From Piromyces finnis finn (Eukaryota > Fungi > Neocallimastigomycota), in the NCBI GenBank assembly GCA_002104945.1, contig MCFH01000031.1, positions 248,001-312,000 on the forward strand: a DNA stretch of 64,000 nt, written 5' to 3'. The translations under genes were made by a program, and so were the position numbers. Below are positions 1 to 22,876 of this stretch, one piece after another; position 1 is the stretch's first letter; each line of letters starts with the position of its first letter. The notes below the pieces were generated by a model. The model made no database searches and had not been told where the DNA came from. It saw only the letters and a list, made by a program, of their open reading frames with translations.

Positions 1-3000
1 AAGAAAAAAAAAACTTACCATCCTCATATTTTTTATTTTTATTTGTTAATTCATTTAATAAGGATAAAACTCGAAGAGTGATAATTTTATATTTAAAATT
101 CCCAAAAATATCAAAATAATCGGCCAAGTAATCTAATTAATTTGCAATAATTATTATCAATAATAAAAAAAATAAATAAATTTATATAAGCAATCTAAAA
201 TTTCATTTATATATGTATAATATGTATATATATATATTATATACCAATATATAAATATGTCTGTTCTATATTATCAATATAGCAATCAATGATTTCTCTA
301 TCTATAATAATAATAAAAAAAATTAATTATATAATAGTAGGGTTATTTGTAAGATAAGATATTAAATAAATATAATAATACCTTGTTTATATTTTAAAAG
401 TGAAGAAAACAATTTATCCCAAGTTTTTAATGCTGTTTTAAAATACTTGATTTGTTTATCTTTTAACTTATTCATGATTATACCATAAATTGAATATGAA
501 ATAGATAAATAATTATTTCTTTGATTTATTTTATTACTATCGTTTTTATAGTCCTAGAAAAGAAAAGTAGATAATATATTATTAATTTATAAATAAATAT
601 AAATATAATTGAAAATATTATGTATTTATATTCAAAATATTCTGATAGTATTTATTATTTACATCTTTCTTTAATAGATTAATAATTGATTGGCATAAAT
701 TTAAATGATCATTAACATTTTGAGGTTTCAATACTTTATATAAATGTAATTTTTTTAATTGAAACTTCGAATAAGTAAATGGATATAAGTTTTCGTCATA
801 ATATTTTAGAATATAATCAATTGATTTAAATTGTTCATTTTCAGTATTATGTTTATTTTCTATAGCTTCTAAAGTTTGAAGTTCGTATTTCAAAATATTT
901 AAAATATAACTTTCGAATTCTTTCTTGTTATATAAATTATTGGATAGAATTTCATCTAAAAAAAGATATGGATGTGTATCTATCATTGAAATAGAAAATC
1001 GGACATAATGTTCAATGATTTTGATAATATCATTACTTGATTTAGAATCTGAATAGTTAAATTTTTTATATTCATCCAAAGGTATCCGTTTAAAAGATTC
1101 AATTAAAGTATTTCTTGCAGTCTATATAAACCAAAACAAATTAATAAATAGAAGATAGCAGTAATAAAATACACATATTTATATATTATATATATATACC
1201 TCTTTTTCATGTATGTAATAATAACAGATAGCAAGCATATCTAATATATTAGCTAATTCCAACGATTGATCCTTTACTTTTAATAAAGTTTTGTATGAAA
1301 AATCAAATAGTGATATGGATTCTTTATAATATTTATTTTTATAAAGTTTAATTGCAATATTTGAATATGCTTTTGATATTTCTTTAAATCCATTGATACA
1401 TGAATATTTCTCTGCTAATTCTTTTGCTGCTTCAAGATAGTTATCAATATAAAGCCATGTATTATAATCTTCAAATATGAAACATAAATTTGATAATAAA
1501 GTTTCACATTTAATAATTATTGAAACCAGCTCTTTCTTGTGCTAATATATTAAAATAATATTAATATTATTATAGATAAATGATATATTATTATAAAATA
1601 AAAAAAAAATAATTATAAATAAGAATGATTATAATAAATACACAAATTAAATTAATATTTTATAATATATTGATATTTTACCTGATATAACTTTTTCAAA
1701 AGAAGAAAATTAAGCAAAGAAATGATTTTTTCAAATAAATTAATTAATGATTTTCGTTGTTTGGTTAATAAGGTAGATGTTTTTTTGCTATTAAAAAGAT
1801 ATAAATTTTGATTGATAATTTTTATAAAAGTTTCAATCGAATTTATAATTTGTTGGGTATTATCGTTTTCAATAGCAGGTATATTTATTGATGATGAAAA
1901 GGCTTGTTTAGTTAATTCAATGAAATCTAGTTGTTTTTCAACATATTGATAGCTTTCATGATAAAATTTTGATTTATCTAATATATAATATAAATATATC
2001 AATTAAGTATTATTTATATCCTTTAAACTACCTAAAAAGAAAAAAAAAATGATGTAAAATACAAATTTATTAACAATTATTACTTACCAATATATATAAA
2101 AATATCATAAAATAAGAGATGATTGATGTCTAAGTCCGCCAAAAATTTTGTAGTATAAAAGGTATAATCCTGTATTTTATTATTTTTCTTTAACACTTTT
2201 AAAATTCTAAATAGAATTTCTCTTGAATTAATAACAATTGTTGGATTTTTTATCTTTATTATTTATTATATATTATATAAATTTTAAATTATAAAATATT
2301 TGTTAATTAATAAACATTAACTAACATTTATAATAATTATTAAGCAATATAATATTGCAGTAAAAAACATCAAAAATTATGTAATATTTAAGTACCTTTT
2401 TTCCTAAATATAGATAATGGTCCAACAATGTAATTAATTTTTTTGAAAGATTTAGTTGAATTATATCATTATCAGATATAAATGAAAATGCTTTTTCATA
2501 AAATTTTGAAATAGTATTAACTATAGGTATTAGATCTTTTTAAATATGAAAAATAGATAAACTTAATCGATTTTTCCTGTTATTAATTAAAAAATTGATT
2601 AATAAAATACAAAAAAAAAAAAAAAAAAAAAATGCTTACTTGATTCAGTTTTCATTTTTTGCTCAAAAGTATATGCATATTTTAAAATAGCATCAATATA
2701 CCAATTAATTGTTGATCCACCTGTTTTACGCATTGCTTCTAATGCCACAAATTGAATTTTGAATGAAATTTCTGGGTTTCGATCTTTTATTTATAAATTT
2801 TTATAAATAATAATAATTACAAATTTTATACAAAATTAAGAACTTATGAATAGTATATATTGAGAATTTTATTATCATTATTATTATAAATTACCTTTAT
2901 ATTTTTCAGATATCTCTTTTAGAAGAACTCTACAAATATTAGAATATAGCTTTTCTGATAGTAATTTATTTTTTTCCCTAACAAAATTACAATGTTTATA

Positions 3001-4017
3001 TAATGTAAAATTTCGTTCATTGAACATAAAATCTAAATTCTAATTATATCGAATTGTTGTTTTTGTTAAAATTTAATAAATGAAATTTAAATAAATGGAT
3101 TTTCATATTATTCAATAAATTTAATTAAGAAATTTTATAATTATTACATTTCTATAAGAAAGACATTTTATGCAATTTAATTGTGTCGTGATTATTAATT
3201 GTGAAAATTTGTTTAAATCCTCTTTGTTATTAATAATTGGGATGATTAATATCTTTTTATGCAATTGAATTATTTCATTGTATGAACATTTCATTTCATT
3301 TTCAAAATATCTGGATTGTATTCTTTCATATAAATGTTTTAATTGAATTTCGGCAGATTCAATCTTTTAATTATATTAAATTATTTAATATAAAATAATA
3401 ATAATAATAATAATAATAATAATTAAAAAAAAAAAAAAGTCAAAAATAAATAAAAATAATTGTCAACTATTATATTATTACTATACCATTTGAATTTCAA
3501 TTAGTTTTGTAATTAAGTTTGAATGAGCTAAATCAATATCAATAGGTTTTATATTTAAATAAATTTCCAAGCGTTCTAATACTTCTAAAGTAATTTTTGA
3601 GCTTTCAATTAAACTTAATTTTTCACTTGTGTAATCTTTATTATCATTTATAAGAACAGGCTCCTCATCAATAATAATTATTTCATCATTTTTATCCTTC
3701 ATTTGGTTAATATTACTTTTCTGTTTTTTGTTTAAATTTTCATAGGTATCATCACTTAGGTCAATGAAATTAAATTTTCGCTTTTTACTATTTGAAATTT
3801 CATTATTAATTTCAGATAATGTTTTTATAATCTGATTGAAAATTTTCATAGCAATGGGAGCATATTGAAAAGCCAATATTTTAAAATTTTCATTATTATC
3901 TTTTGAGGTTAAAACAGGTTTAAAAATTTTATTTAAGGACACTACTAATTTTGGATTACATTTTGAAATGGTAGAATAAGATATTAATATTGAATTAATA
4001 TTCTCAACTTTCAACAT
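1..4017 (-). CDS. Large multi-exon helical/TPR-like protein, runs off the left edge; possibly the N-terminal half of separase (tentative)
   Basis: ATG at 4017. I translated open exons bounded by GT/AG at about 4017-3487, 3362-3145, 2785-2640, 1550-1200 and 132-18; ORF-track hits at 618-1079 and 1652-2002 fall in the same gene. The 1550-1200 exon encodes a TPR-like stretch (ISKAYSNIAIKLYKNKYYKESISLFDFSYKTL). The last visible exon (YLADYFDIFGNFKYKIITLRVL) ends in a GTAAG donor, so the gene continues outside the window. Confidence 0.6.
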
Positions 4018-18544: not shown

Positions 18545-18804
18545 ATGGTTAAGTTTTTCTTTTTCTGATACTAAAATATTAAATTTATAATATAAATCAA
18601 ATTATAAAATTTGTGTATTAAAAATTATATATCAAAATTTCTTATTCTAATAGAACTTATTATATAAAATATACTTTATATAAATTAAAAGAACACTAAA
18701 TTATCTATAAAAATATAAGAGTAAATTTTACTTTGAACTTAAAAAAAATCAAAAATTTATAATTTTTTTTTGTTCTGTCAATTTTCTTCATACAATTATG
18801 GTAT

Positions 18805-20280
18805 TCAGGCAGATTCAGATATTTGCTTTTGGTTTGAAATATTAACATCGGCACCAACTTGAATTTGTTGAGAAATTTTCTTTGAAACTTTTGATTTTTG
18901 TCTGAGGTATTCTTTTTTGGATTCACGAACTATGTCAAGATAGTCTTGGAATAAGTATTCTGTATCTTGTGGTCCAGCTTTTGCTTCTGGGTGATATTGA
19001 ACAGAAGCAAATGGTAAAGTTTTGTGGCGAATACCTTCATTAGAACCATCATTAGCATTAACAAAGTACTTTTCCCAACCTTCAACCATATCCTTTTCAC
19101 CATCCTTAATTGCGAATCCATGGTTTTGAGATGTGATAACACATTGATTAGTTAATAAGTTTATAGCTGGTTGGTTGTGACCTCTGTTACCATATGGAAG
19201 TTTATATGTTTCAAATCCAGCAGCAGCACCTAAAAGAAGATTACCCATACAAATACCAAATATTGGAGTTGGAACTGCTTTTGAAGATTCACGAATTAAA
19301 AGTTTTCTAAGGTTCATAACAGTTTCATCACAATAACTTGGATTACCTGGTCCATTAGAAATAAAGATACCATCATAATGAGTGGAATCCTTAGTTACAT
19401 CATGATTCCATGGAACAAGATGTACTTCAGCTCCACGCTTAGCTAAACATCTAATAATATTTTGTTTGGCACCACAATCAATTAATGCAATTTTAACATC
19501 TCCTCCTTTATTATAAATCTTTTTTGATTTTACAGATACTTCTGCTACTAAATTTCTTTTATTTGGATCTTCTAATTCTTTTGCTGGTTTTGCGTCTCCA
19601 ATGATTATCTCTCCTAAGGTAGAACCTTGTTCTCTTAATAAGGTAACAATAGCTCTAGTATCTACACCACTCAAAGCTGGAATATTATTTCTAGCACACC
19701 ATTCACCTAAACTTTCTACAGCATTCCAATGGGAATACTTTTTAGCATAATCAGTAACAATAATACCCTTAACATGAATTTTATCACTTTCAAAATGCTT
19801 AAATAAACCAAATTCATCCTTATCCATAGCTGGAACACCATAATTACCAATTAATGGTTGAGTAAATACAAGAATTTGTCCTCTGTATGATGGGTCACTC
19901 ATTGATTCTGGATAACCAACCAATGAGGTAGTAAAAACTACTTCACCAGAAATACTTTCTTTTAATGGTGCACCAAAAGAGGTAGCTTTAAATGTTTGTC
20001 CAGTTTTAAGTCTAAAGGTAGCTGGTAATTCTGGTGGTTGAATATGATTTTTAAAGAAGGTTGGCTTTTCATTTTTTGGAAGTTGACTAACCTTAGCATT
20101 TTTAACTGATGAATTAAATGAAATTGGGTCAAGTGTTACAGTGGCAAATGGTCTACTGTTTAAATTTTGAGTATTTTCGTTTAAGCTTTTTGGTAATTGA
20201 CTAATAAATCTTCTGCAAATATTTGAAGATGCGTTCTTTAATTGAACAGTAGACTTTAAAAGATTAGCTGATTGAATCAT
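18805..20280 (-). CDS. CPA1: Arginine-specific carbamoyl-phosphate synthase small (glutaminase) subunit with organellar presequence
   Basis: GEVVFTTSLVGYPESMSDPSYRGQIL, FISNGPGNP, FGICMG nucleophile, SQNHGFA, QYHPE triad. Basic, Ser-rich N-terminal extension of about 50 aa. Single exon. Confidence 0.96.
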   Translation of the reverse strand: MIQSANLLKSTVQLKNASSNICRRFISQLPKSLNENTQNLNSRPFATVTLDPISFNSSVKNAKVSQLPKNEKPTFFKNHIQPPELPATFRLKTGQTFKATSFGAPLKESISGEVVFTTSLVGYPESMSDPSYRGQILVFTQPLIGNYGVPAMDKDEFGLFKHFESDKIHVKGIIVTDYAKKYSHWNAVESLGEWCARNNIPALSGVDTRAIVTLLREQGSTLGEIIIGDAKPAKELEDPNKRNLVAEVSVKSKKIYNKGGDVKIALIDCGAKQNIIRCLAKRGAEVHLVPWNHDVTKDSTHYDGIFISNGPGNPSYCDETVMNLRKLLIRESSKAVPTPIFGICMGNLLLGAAAGFETYKLPYGNRGHNQPAINLLTNQCVITSQNHGFAIKDGEKDMVEGWEKYFVNANDGSNEGIRHKTLPFASVQYHPEAKAGPQDTEYLFQDYLDIVRESKKEYLRQKSKVSKKISQQIQVGADVNISNQKQISESA

Positions 20281-20495
20281 TTTGTTTTTATTTTAAACTT
20301 TTTATTATAAAATTAAGTTGTAAGAGTGTTAAAGTAATATAATTTTTATATTTTTTGTTTTTATTGTTATTTTAAATAAAATATTATATTTTTAATAGGT
20401 TTATTTTTATTATTAGAGAATTAATCAAAATCGATAAAGTATTAGTTAAGGCTTTCAACAGTAAACTTTCAACAAGTGGGTTTTATTAAAAAAGT

Positions 20496-20582
20496 TTAAA
20501 AATTTGATAATGATTTCCAGAGTTGAACGCAGAGATAATCACAGGAGACTACAGTAAAAGCGTGAATATATGTGTATAACAT
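20496..20582 (-). CDS. uORF encoding an arginine attenuator peptide (AAP)-like leader, MLYTYIHAFTVVSCDYLCVQLWKSLSNF
   Basis: 28 codons plus TAA, ending 215 nt upstream of the CPA1 ATG on the same strand. DYL-x3-LW[KR]-x-L aligns with the N. crassa AAP core DYLSDHLWRAL. Confidence 0.8.
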   Translation of the reverse strand: MLYTYIHAFTVVSCDYLCVQLWKSLSNF

Positions 20583-22876
20583 ATGTTACTTTTTGATAAA
20601 CTTTAATATTATATTTTTTTTAAAAAAAAAAGGTTTTTTTTTTTAAAAAAAATTTATATGTTTATAAATTCAGTATTGCTTTTTCTTTGATTGTTTTGAT
20701 TAGTAATGTAAAAAGGAATTGAAAATTTCTTTAAAAATTACTTAAATATAAAAAAAAATAAGCTTTTTTTTTTTTTTTTTTTGACTATTAGATGTTTATT
20801 TTAAGTTCTAAACCTATTAAAAATGTAATTAGAATATAACAATTATGTTAATACAATGATTCAAAAACCATATTTTATTTTTATATAAAGAGTTGTCAAT
20901 AATTATTATTTTTCACATTATATTTTTTTTTTCAATAACATTTTACTTTTTTATCCATTTTTACGCCATTATTTTTATTACTATTGTTTTTTCTTTCGAA
21001 ATAAGATAAATAATATAATTTCCTCTAAACACATTTTCAATTTATTATTTACAATATTATTATTGTAAATATACAAAATATATAATAATTTATTTTCTAT
21101 TAAACAATTTATCATACTTTTCATTGTTCAATCATTTACATTTTCTAATTATATAATTTTACTTTTCATCATTTCTTATACATTACATTATAATTTTTCA
21201 ATAAAATATTACCTTTTAAATCTAGAATTTTTTTTTTATTTGATTATTTTATTTTCTCAAAGAAGAAAATGACAGAAATTTGTTTTTTCTTTATATATTT
21301 TAAAATATAAAAAATGTGAAAAGTAAATTTTAAAAAAAGAAAGAAATTTCAATATATTTATATTTTTAAAAATATATTAAAAACTAATTCTTTATTTAAT
21401 ATATTATATAGTCAATTCTAATATATTATATATTTTTAAAGTTTCTATTTTACTTTTTAATTTTATTATATATACCAGGTTGAAATTTTTAAAATTATGA
21501 GATTTTTCAAAATATATTGAATAATATATATAAATGTTTAAAAATAAATATATTTTATCCTTGAAAATTTTACCAATATTTTCAATATAAAATTGATTAT
21601 ACTATAATACAATGTAATATATTTATGTTAACATAGTCTAATATAATAATGCATATATTATAGTATATTAAATATATATCAATATTTTTATATAGAATTA
21701 AAATTTTGTTTTATAATAATTAAAATTTCTTTAACTTTAATTCATGATTTTTCTATTAGAGCCTGACTATATATTTTATAATATAATATAATATAATACA
21801 CAATATATTATATTTGCTATTGATGTAAATTATTTATATTACTTATATTATAATTTAAATAAAAAAACATAAAATATATTAAACTCTAATATATTATTAT
21901 TTTCATCCTTTAAATTATCAAAATATTAATTAATTCTTTTTATCATTAGACTTTTATATTAGTAAATAAAATTATTTATTATCTTAATATACAATAATAT
22001 ATTGTATCATATATTAAACCATTATATTAATACATTATTAAATAATATTCAATATTGAATAATAATTAGTAATTAATAAATAACAAGCACTAATTTAGGG
22101 CCATCATTAGTGATGCTAATAAAATAGCAAGTGGAATTTAATATAATAATAGTATTATTATCGAAATAAAACAATTTATATATATAAAAAGTTATTTATT
22201 AAAGTTCAAAGGTAAAATTAGTTTTGTGAAGAGAATAAATAAAAAAAAAAAAAAGAATATCGCCATTGTATTGTATAATATACAGAAATTAAGGAAAATT
22301 TATAATAACTTTAGTAATTTCCAAAGGAATACAAAAGGTTATGAAATAAATTTATTATTAATATTTACATATATAGAAATAAAAGAATCCTCTAATAATT
22401 ATTATTTCTTAGTTTTAAAAGTAAAATATTACTTTAAAATATTAATATATATTAAACACTAAATAGAAATATATATGTTTATTAGTTTAAACCATTAAAA
22501 ATTAGTCAAGGTCATTGGAATCAAGGGGAAAAAGGATAAATATATAGAAAAGATATCATTTGTCCTTTCACTAGTCATGAATTAATTTTAAGTATTAATT
22601 AAAAATTTTATTTTATTAAAAAAAAAACAATAAAATTTTAATAGTAGAATAGTATAAAATTTCATTTTATACATAAATAAAATATTTTTGTTAAATGTAA
22701 CTTATATAAAGTTATTAGTTGCATCATTTAATTAATAAAAATTGTTACTCTAAACTTTTTTAATATAGATGCAGTAATATAATTATTACTATTTTATTAT
22801 TATATTTTTAAAAGTAATAATTAATAATTATTTATTAAATTATATTTTAACATTTTTTTTTGCCTTATGAAGGTTA

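Follow-up and report, generated by a model that had tools for sequence, protein, structure and literature searches.

A probable arginine attenuator peptide uORF upstream of one of two CPA1 paralogues in the gut fungus Piromyces finnis

Few eukaryotic nascent peptides are known to detect a small molecule within the ribosome tunnel, and the fungal arginine attenuator peptide (AAP) is among them. When arginine is high, the nascent AAP stalls the ribosome at the stop codon of its upstream open reading frame (uORF) and thereby blocks scanning ribosomes, and the stalled mRNA can become a target of nonsense-mediated decay (PMC11550727, PMC7969011, PMC7038982). The AAP response is lost when the core Asp is replaced by Asn, and within the exit tunnel uL4 is contacted by Asp-12 (PMC11550727, PMC7969011, PMC7038982). 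The yeast CPA1 uORF has a poor start context and regulates by leaky scanning, and its D13N mutation abolishes regulation (PMC7969011). Our literature search found no paper joining the AAP with Neocallimastigomycota or chytrids, and a full-text search for canonical AAP peptide strings found nothing. Earlier publication of chytrid AAPs is nevertheless possible; the AAP surveys across fungi by Hood et al. (2007) and Spevak et al. (2010) are said to include zygomycete and chytrid sequences. For residue mapping we used what we take to be the N. crassa AAP sequence and, apart from the stretch T-C-Q-D13-Y-I, what we take to be the yeast CPA1 peptide. This yeast stretch matches the printed D13N primer (PMC7969011).

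Here we describe a short uORF in the leader of a CPA1 gene of Piromyces finnis, located in a 64,000-nucleotide stretch of contig MCFH01000031.1 (hereafter the window, whose positions are used throughout). The uORF belongs to the known AAP family and does not represent a new kind of system. What it adds is modest: a C-V variant of the core, an intronless uORF compared with the apparently intron-split ones of chytrids, and retention on one of two paralogues. Our preferred reading, held with good confidence, is that this uORF represents the fungal AAP in the Neocallimastigomycota as an orthologue, lying in the leader of one of two CPA1 paralogues and presumably responding to arginine. Its homology to the AAP is very probable. 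Arginine-responsive stalling by the C-V variant, whose core lacks the second acidic residue, is for that reason graded lower, as moderately likely.

The uORF and its leader in the window

The features of the locus are as follows.

18805..20280, minus strand: main ORF for the CPA1/arg-2-type carbamoyl-phosphate synthetase small subunit, paralogue A, 491 aa, intronless
20281..20495, minus strand: intercistronic leader, 215 nt, no ATG, with two conserved elements, a block at ~20413-20445 and AAAAAGTTTAAAA immediately preceding the main ATG
20496..20582, minus strand: AAP-like uORF, 28 codons plus TAA, reading MLYTYIHAFTVVSCDYLCVQLWKSLSNF (from the sequence, the ORF list and orthologues)
20514..20540, minus strand: core D15-Y16-L17-C18-V19-Q20-L21-W22-K23, equivalent to D12..R20 of the N. 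crassa AAP
20583..20870, minus strand: upstream leader/promoter region, ATG-free over 288 nt, with the nearest upstream ATG starting at 20871
20614..20652, minus strand: tract T8 A11 CC T10 A8 (mRNA strand), 32-70 nt upstream of the uORF ATG, with almost no variation among five taxa

The protein of the main ORF contains the Pfam domains CPSase_sm_chain (PF00988, 6e-44) and GATase (PF00117, 6e-45) and has an N-terminal extension of ~90 residues. An earlier note, made from the letters of this DNA alone, had proposed a 28-codon ATG uORF on the CPA1 strand, ending 215 nt before the CPA1 ATG in a GC-richer island, and all three points were borne out. The uORF is present in both the sequence and the ORF list, and its stop codon at 20498-20496 is separated by 215 nt from the main ATG at 20280. 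The GC content is 30-32% at 20450-20600; the intergenic DNA around it has 8-16% and the CPA1 CDS 29-38%.

Across all six frames of the 64,000-base window, the motif DY[LI]xxx[LI]W[RK] occurs once, at the uORF, and the looser DYxxxxxW is likewise found once, at the same spot, which argues that the uORF is more than a chance ORF. Seven of nine positions fit the AAP core D-Y-[LI]-S-[DE]-[HQ]-[LIV]-[WY]-[RK]; the two misfits are the S and D/E positions, occupied by C and V in all Neocallimastigomycota sequences. Further features of the family are present: the uORF is a short AUG-initiated ORF of 28 codons (~24-28 in the family), and it lies in the 5' leader of an arginine-specific CPSase small-subunit gene, on the strand of that gene. 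The earlier mapping of D12, Y13 and W19 to D15, Y16 and W22 holds against the presumed N. crassa sequence. With the presumed peptides of N. crassa and yeast, the window uORF shares D, Y, L, a residue fitting [HQ] (Q20), L, W, K/R and the L two residues after K/R, and it has C-V in place of S-D. The replacement of SDH by CVQ with retention of the flanking core residues, also claimed in the note, thus stands against these peptides, and Q20 fits the [HQ] position of the family. The residues C and V at positions 15 (S) and 16 (D/E) in N. crassa numbering are unlike those of every other AAP that we examined or take as known.

The start context of the uORF, taacatATGT, is identical in all taxa and weak, with C at -3 and T at +4, whereas the main ATG lies in a strong context (aacaaaATGA or similar, with A at -3). 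The spacers between the uORF and the main ATG, 215-281 nt long, contain no ATG in any of the seven sequences, against 1.6-2.3 expected in each. Upstream of the uORF in the window, about 3 ATGs would be expected in the ATG-free stretch of ~288 nt. This combination of a weak uORF context, a stronger main context and an AUG-free spacer is, at the sequence level, the layout expected for control by leaky scanning, of the kind reported for yeast CPA1 (PMC7969011). Judged from its sequence, the window contains a uORF with the position, length, start context and AUG-free spacer needed by the AAP mechanism, and with most of the core.

According to this mechanism, the weak context of the uORF AUG would allow many scanning ribosomes to leak past to the CPA1 AUG. 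In the ribosomes that translate the uORF, the nascent D-Y-L...Q-L-W-K core would act inside the exit tunnel, and at high arginine, the presumed effector, the ribosome would stall at the uORF stop codon. The stalled ribosome would then block the scanning ribosomes behind it and reduce CPA1 synthesis. The stall may also trigger decay of the mRNA.

Several non-coding elements of the leader are conserved in addition to the uORF. Upstream of it are the blocks TTAAGTAAT..AAAGAAATTTTCAATT (~20717-20745) and ATACTG, and the T8 A11 CC T10 A8 tract could be a promoter tract or form an A/U hairpin in the leader. In the spacer, the block CTAATACTTTATCGATTTTGATTAATTCT (20413-20445, minus strand) is conserved amid poorly conserved, indel-rich surroundings. 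Four sequencing runs hold 79-95% of the words of 18700-20900; whether they are RNA or DNA is a guess, and they were left out of the evidence.

Conservation and transcription of the uORF in the Neocallimastigomycota

The nearest proteins to the window CPA1 are 91-95% identical to it (93% for the nearest relative), and chytrid CPA1 proteins are 60-68% identical. The 90%-identity cluster of the nearest proteins includes Neocallimastix lanati, N. 'constans', N. californiae, Anaeromyces robustus and Piromyces sp. E2. The Neocallimastigomycota have two CPA1 paralogues, A, to which the window gene belongs, and B, at 71% identity. In a maximum-likelihood tree, the sister clades A and B (support 100/99) fall among the CPA1 sequences of chytrids, and the window sequence is the first branch inside clade A.

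Paralogue A loci were taken from the genomes of A. robustus (L007), Piromyces sp. E2 (L009) and N. californiae (L010) and from the metagenomic JGI contigs L001, L003 and L008. Paralogue-B contigs L002 and L006 and paralogue-A contig L004 were left out because their upstream parts were too short. In all six paralogue A loci, a 28-codon uORF is found at the matching position, with a spacer of 233-281 nt, and its peptide is identical in all six (MLFTYIHAFTVVSCDYLCVQLWKSLSDF). The window peptide differs from it at only two residues, Y3F and N27D, both conservative and near the ends of the peptide. At the corresponding place in the public assemblies of the three genomes (L007, L009 and L010) no gene is called, in line with the description of the uORF as unannotated in the earlier note.

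The mean pairwise DNA identity among five distinct taxa is as follows.

300 nt upstream of the uORF: identity 67%, gaps 9%
uORF: identity 95.9%, no gaps
Intercistronic spacer: identity 69.6%, gaps 17%
CDS: identity 87-90%, gaps ~1-2%

With 95.9% against 87-90%, the uORF is more conserved than the enzyme encoded downstream. The branch lengths in clade A are 0.002-0.03, so that its crown group is young and conservation inside it, taken alone, is of limited power.

The three JGI contigs are spliced. L008 aligns to the genome of A. robustus in three blocks of 99.5-100% identity and lacks two GT-AG introns, one of 303 nt in the CDS and one of ~548 nt in the 5' UTR. L001 matches N. californiae at >99% identity, minus a 315-nt CDS intron, and L003, from a third taxon, is also without the CDS intron. 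All three transcript contigs carry the uORF, which places it in the mature mRNA of at least three relatives and the start of transcription upstream of it in those relatives. The presence of the uORF in the mRNA, raised as a check in the earlier note, is thereby established for A. robustus, an N. californiae-like strain and the third taxon. The uORF ATG is the first ATG in L008, which extends 329 nt upstream, and in L003, which extends 576 nt upstream. The long, N. californiae-like L001 has further ATGs >250 nt upstream of the uORF, and the uORF AUG is therefore not necessarily the first in every isoform.

The CDS intron of ~303-315 nt is present in CPA1-A of Anaeromyces (L007 3309-3611) and Neocallimastix (L010 3117-3431) and absent from that of the window and of Piromyces sp. 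E2; for the window, this follows from the collinearity of its CDS with the spliced transcripts. The 5'-UTR intron of A. robustus (L007 1368-1915, ~548 nt) ends ~217 nt before the uORF ATG. Its proven acceptor, (T)ATAG, has aligned counterparts in TAATAG at 20785-20790 of the window and in comparable sites of three further taxa. TAATAG at 20785-20790 is thus a possible 3' splice site in the window, predicted from this alignment. The transcript contig L001 runs unspliced through the aligned acceptor site. The deposited CPA1-A models of Piromyces sp. E2 (P0127, 444 aa) and N. californiae (P0126, 429 aa) are shorter than the window ORF and the transcript contigs (491-492 aa) and are probably mis-modelled.

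Paralogue B has a different upstream region. We searched the 1.2-2.5 kb preceding paralogue B in three species, A. robustus, P. finnis and N. californiae (L011, L012 and L013), and found no GC island, no conserved uORF, no AAP-like motif and no leftover of the uORF at the nucleotide level. The attenuator is thus found on only one of the copies that arose by the lineage-specific duplication, and for annotation, the uORF marks which of the two CPA1 paralogues is likely to be regulated by arginine. In the metagenome contig L005, a 723-aa ABC-transporter ORF (346-2517) runs into the start of a paralogue-B CPA1 (2501-3961) with no AT-rich spacer, which is probably an assembly chimera, or else an unusual gene order.

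Chytrid counterparts and alternative readings

AAP-like uORFs were found upstream of CPA1 in three chytrids, Gonapodya prolifera (L014, 1701-1961), Rhizoclosmatium globosum (L015, 1693-1922) and Phlyctochytrium arcticum (L016, 1714-1849), with GT-AG introns apparently interrupting their conserved core. In Rhizoclosmatium, the ATG uORF MPYRHSQETTAQDYISDQ (...QDYISDQ) is followed by a predicted intron, GTAAGT...CACAG, and then by VYKSIAA-stop. In Phlyctochytrium, MYSHSSENVCNDYISEQ (...NDYISEQ) is followed by the predicted intron GTAAGG...TACAG and VYKCSGSQ-stop. In Gonapodya, ...SLDYI-D is followed by the predicted intron GTAAGA...CTACAG and DQIWKASSNF-stop. If a second predicted intron (GTGAGC...CTCTAG, 90 nt) is also removed, the uORF of Gonapodya would begin with an ATG, comprise 28 codons and carry D as residue 15, like that of the window.

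The spliced Gonapodya core DYIDDQIWKASSNF was scored by BLOSUM62 against all 45,203 stop-free 14-mers in the six frames of the window. The uORF segment DYLCVQLWKSLSNF ranked first with a score of 47, followed by a runner-up at 31, on a background with mean -13.9 and sd 8.1 (z of about 7.5). With the Rhizoclosmatium core as the query, the uORF segment was also first, narrowly (29 vs 27), and with the Phlyctochytrium core it was outside the top three 14-mers of the window. In Hyaloraphidium curvatum (L017), 2 kb upstream of CPA1 contained neither a D-Y...W motif nor a good 14-mer match; the uORF may be absent there, or intron-split beyond recognition. These predicted intron-split uORFs upstream of chytrid CPA1 genes strengthen the homology to the AAP that the earlier note had put forward.

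The change of S-D to C-V counts against an arginine-responsive peptide: should sensing depend on the second acidic residue, the response to arginine may have changed or disappeared. A drifted AAP homologue would still repress CPA1 in a peptide-dependent manner, either constitutively or with an effector other than arginine. The three chytrid AAPs, like the yeast and N. crassa peptides as we take them to be, have S-D/E, while the window has C18-V19 in a peptide that is nevertheless under purifying selection, and the second, uORF-less CPA1 paralogue could have relaxed or changed the regulatory need. However, the gene context is unchanged, with an arginine-type CPSase small subunit downstream; the core residues D, Y, L, Q, L, W and K are kept; and the distance from W to the stop codon is kept, one residue over that of N. 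crassa. The chytrid AAPs, moreover, vary at other core positions (W to Y and L to V), so the family tolerates change. We consider a drifted homologue of this kind quite improbable and prefer the arginine-responsive AAP orthologue.

Within the AAP family, the C-V pair could also be a natural core variant that senses arginine via fewer contacts, or one with a shifted sensitivity or effector. It would be coupled to the CPA1 duplication, which would have split a regulated from an unregulated carbamoyl-phosphate supply in an anaerobe, with the attenuator kept on one copy and lost on the other. We put this forward tentatively, as a possibility on the unlikely side. If sensing via fewer contacts is true, the second acidic residue of the AAP core is dispensable.

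The conservation might instead reflect an element that acts as nucleic acid, such as a promoter, an RNA structure or a protein-binding site, with the reading frame incidental. The 39-nt core is almost invariant in DNA, and the further non-coding blocks of the leader are conserved too. On the other hand, the third codon position varies in the uORF at Ala8 (GCT, GCA or GCC), Val11, Val12, Leu21 and Ser26, and the stop codon alternates between TAA and TGA without a change of position. The core has a single change, which is synonymous (Leu21, CTC/CTT in L003). Overall, at least 6 of 8 sense-codon changes are synonymous, against 21% expected (P ~1.6e-3), which suggests selection on the peptide and not on the DNA alone. 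The conservation of the peptide in sister genomes, raised in the earlier note, thus extends over three genera and metagenomic contigs, with substitutions biased to synonymous ones. The uORF is free of indels, compared with 9-17% gaps in its flanks, and has a coding-like GC content. Its peptide matches the cores of chytrid AAPs, whose DNA is compositionally unrelated and, as predicted, intron-split. An element of this kind with an incidental frame is thus very improbable.

Short ORFs are numerous in AT-rich leaders, but a generic uORF that captures ribosomes independently of its peptide, or a chance ORF, is disfavoured and has very little probability, given a motif unique in 64 kb, a peptide that is identical across three genera and 2 residues off that of the window, conservation above that of the CPA1 CDS, and matches to the outgroup AAPs.

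Comparison with known systems

Other eukaryotic uORF arrest peptides include those of the hCMV gp48 uORF2 and the mammalian AMD1 MAGDIS uORF, which are alike in stalling the ribosome at the uORF stop codon, sometimes depending on a small molecule (PMC7038982). They have no sequence relationship to the window uORF and belong to other genes with other effectors.

The CPA1 uORF of S. cerevisiae (25 residues) shares the gene context, the D-Y-[I/L] ... [I/L]-W-K core and the K after W with the window uORF. It differs in having S-D-H where the window has C-V-Q, and the yeast enzyme is cytosolic, unlike the window protein with its N-terminal extension. The N. crassa arg-2 uORF is likewise in the leader of the mRNA for an arginine-specific CPSase small subunit, followed by an AUG-free intercistronic region. 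Its AAP has the same core register, D-Y-L-x-x-x-L-W-[R/K]-x-L, in a short AUG ORF that ends a few residues past W. The window peptide, in contrast, is 28 residues long rather than 24, with one residue more between W and the stop codon; S15-D16-H17 is replaced by C-V-Q, and the N-terminal part is unrelated.

The chytrid uORFs are alike in lying upstream of orthologous CPA1 genes and in having Q before the [LIV]-[WY]-K triplet, and that of Gonapodya has ...Q-I-W-K-x-x-S-N-F-stop in common with the window. They differ from the Neocallimastigomycota uORF, which is intronless, in their predicted splitting by introns in the core, and they have V-Y for L-W in two of three cases and, in all three, an acidic residue at the position of the window's V. 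The conserved and transcribed AAP of gut fungi and the predicted intron-split AAPs of chytrids would together place the mechanism in the chytrid-Neocallimastigomycota branch besides the Dikarya, a distribution that fits an early origin in fungal evolution. The natural variants, C-V for S-D in the gut fungi and V-Y for L-W in chytrids, show which positions of the core can change and are thus useful for understanding arginine recognition.
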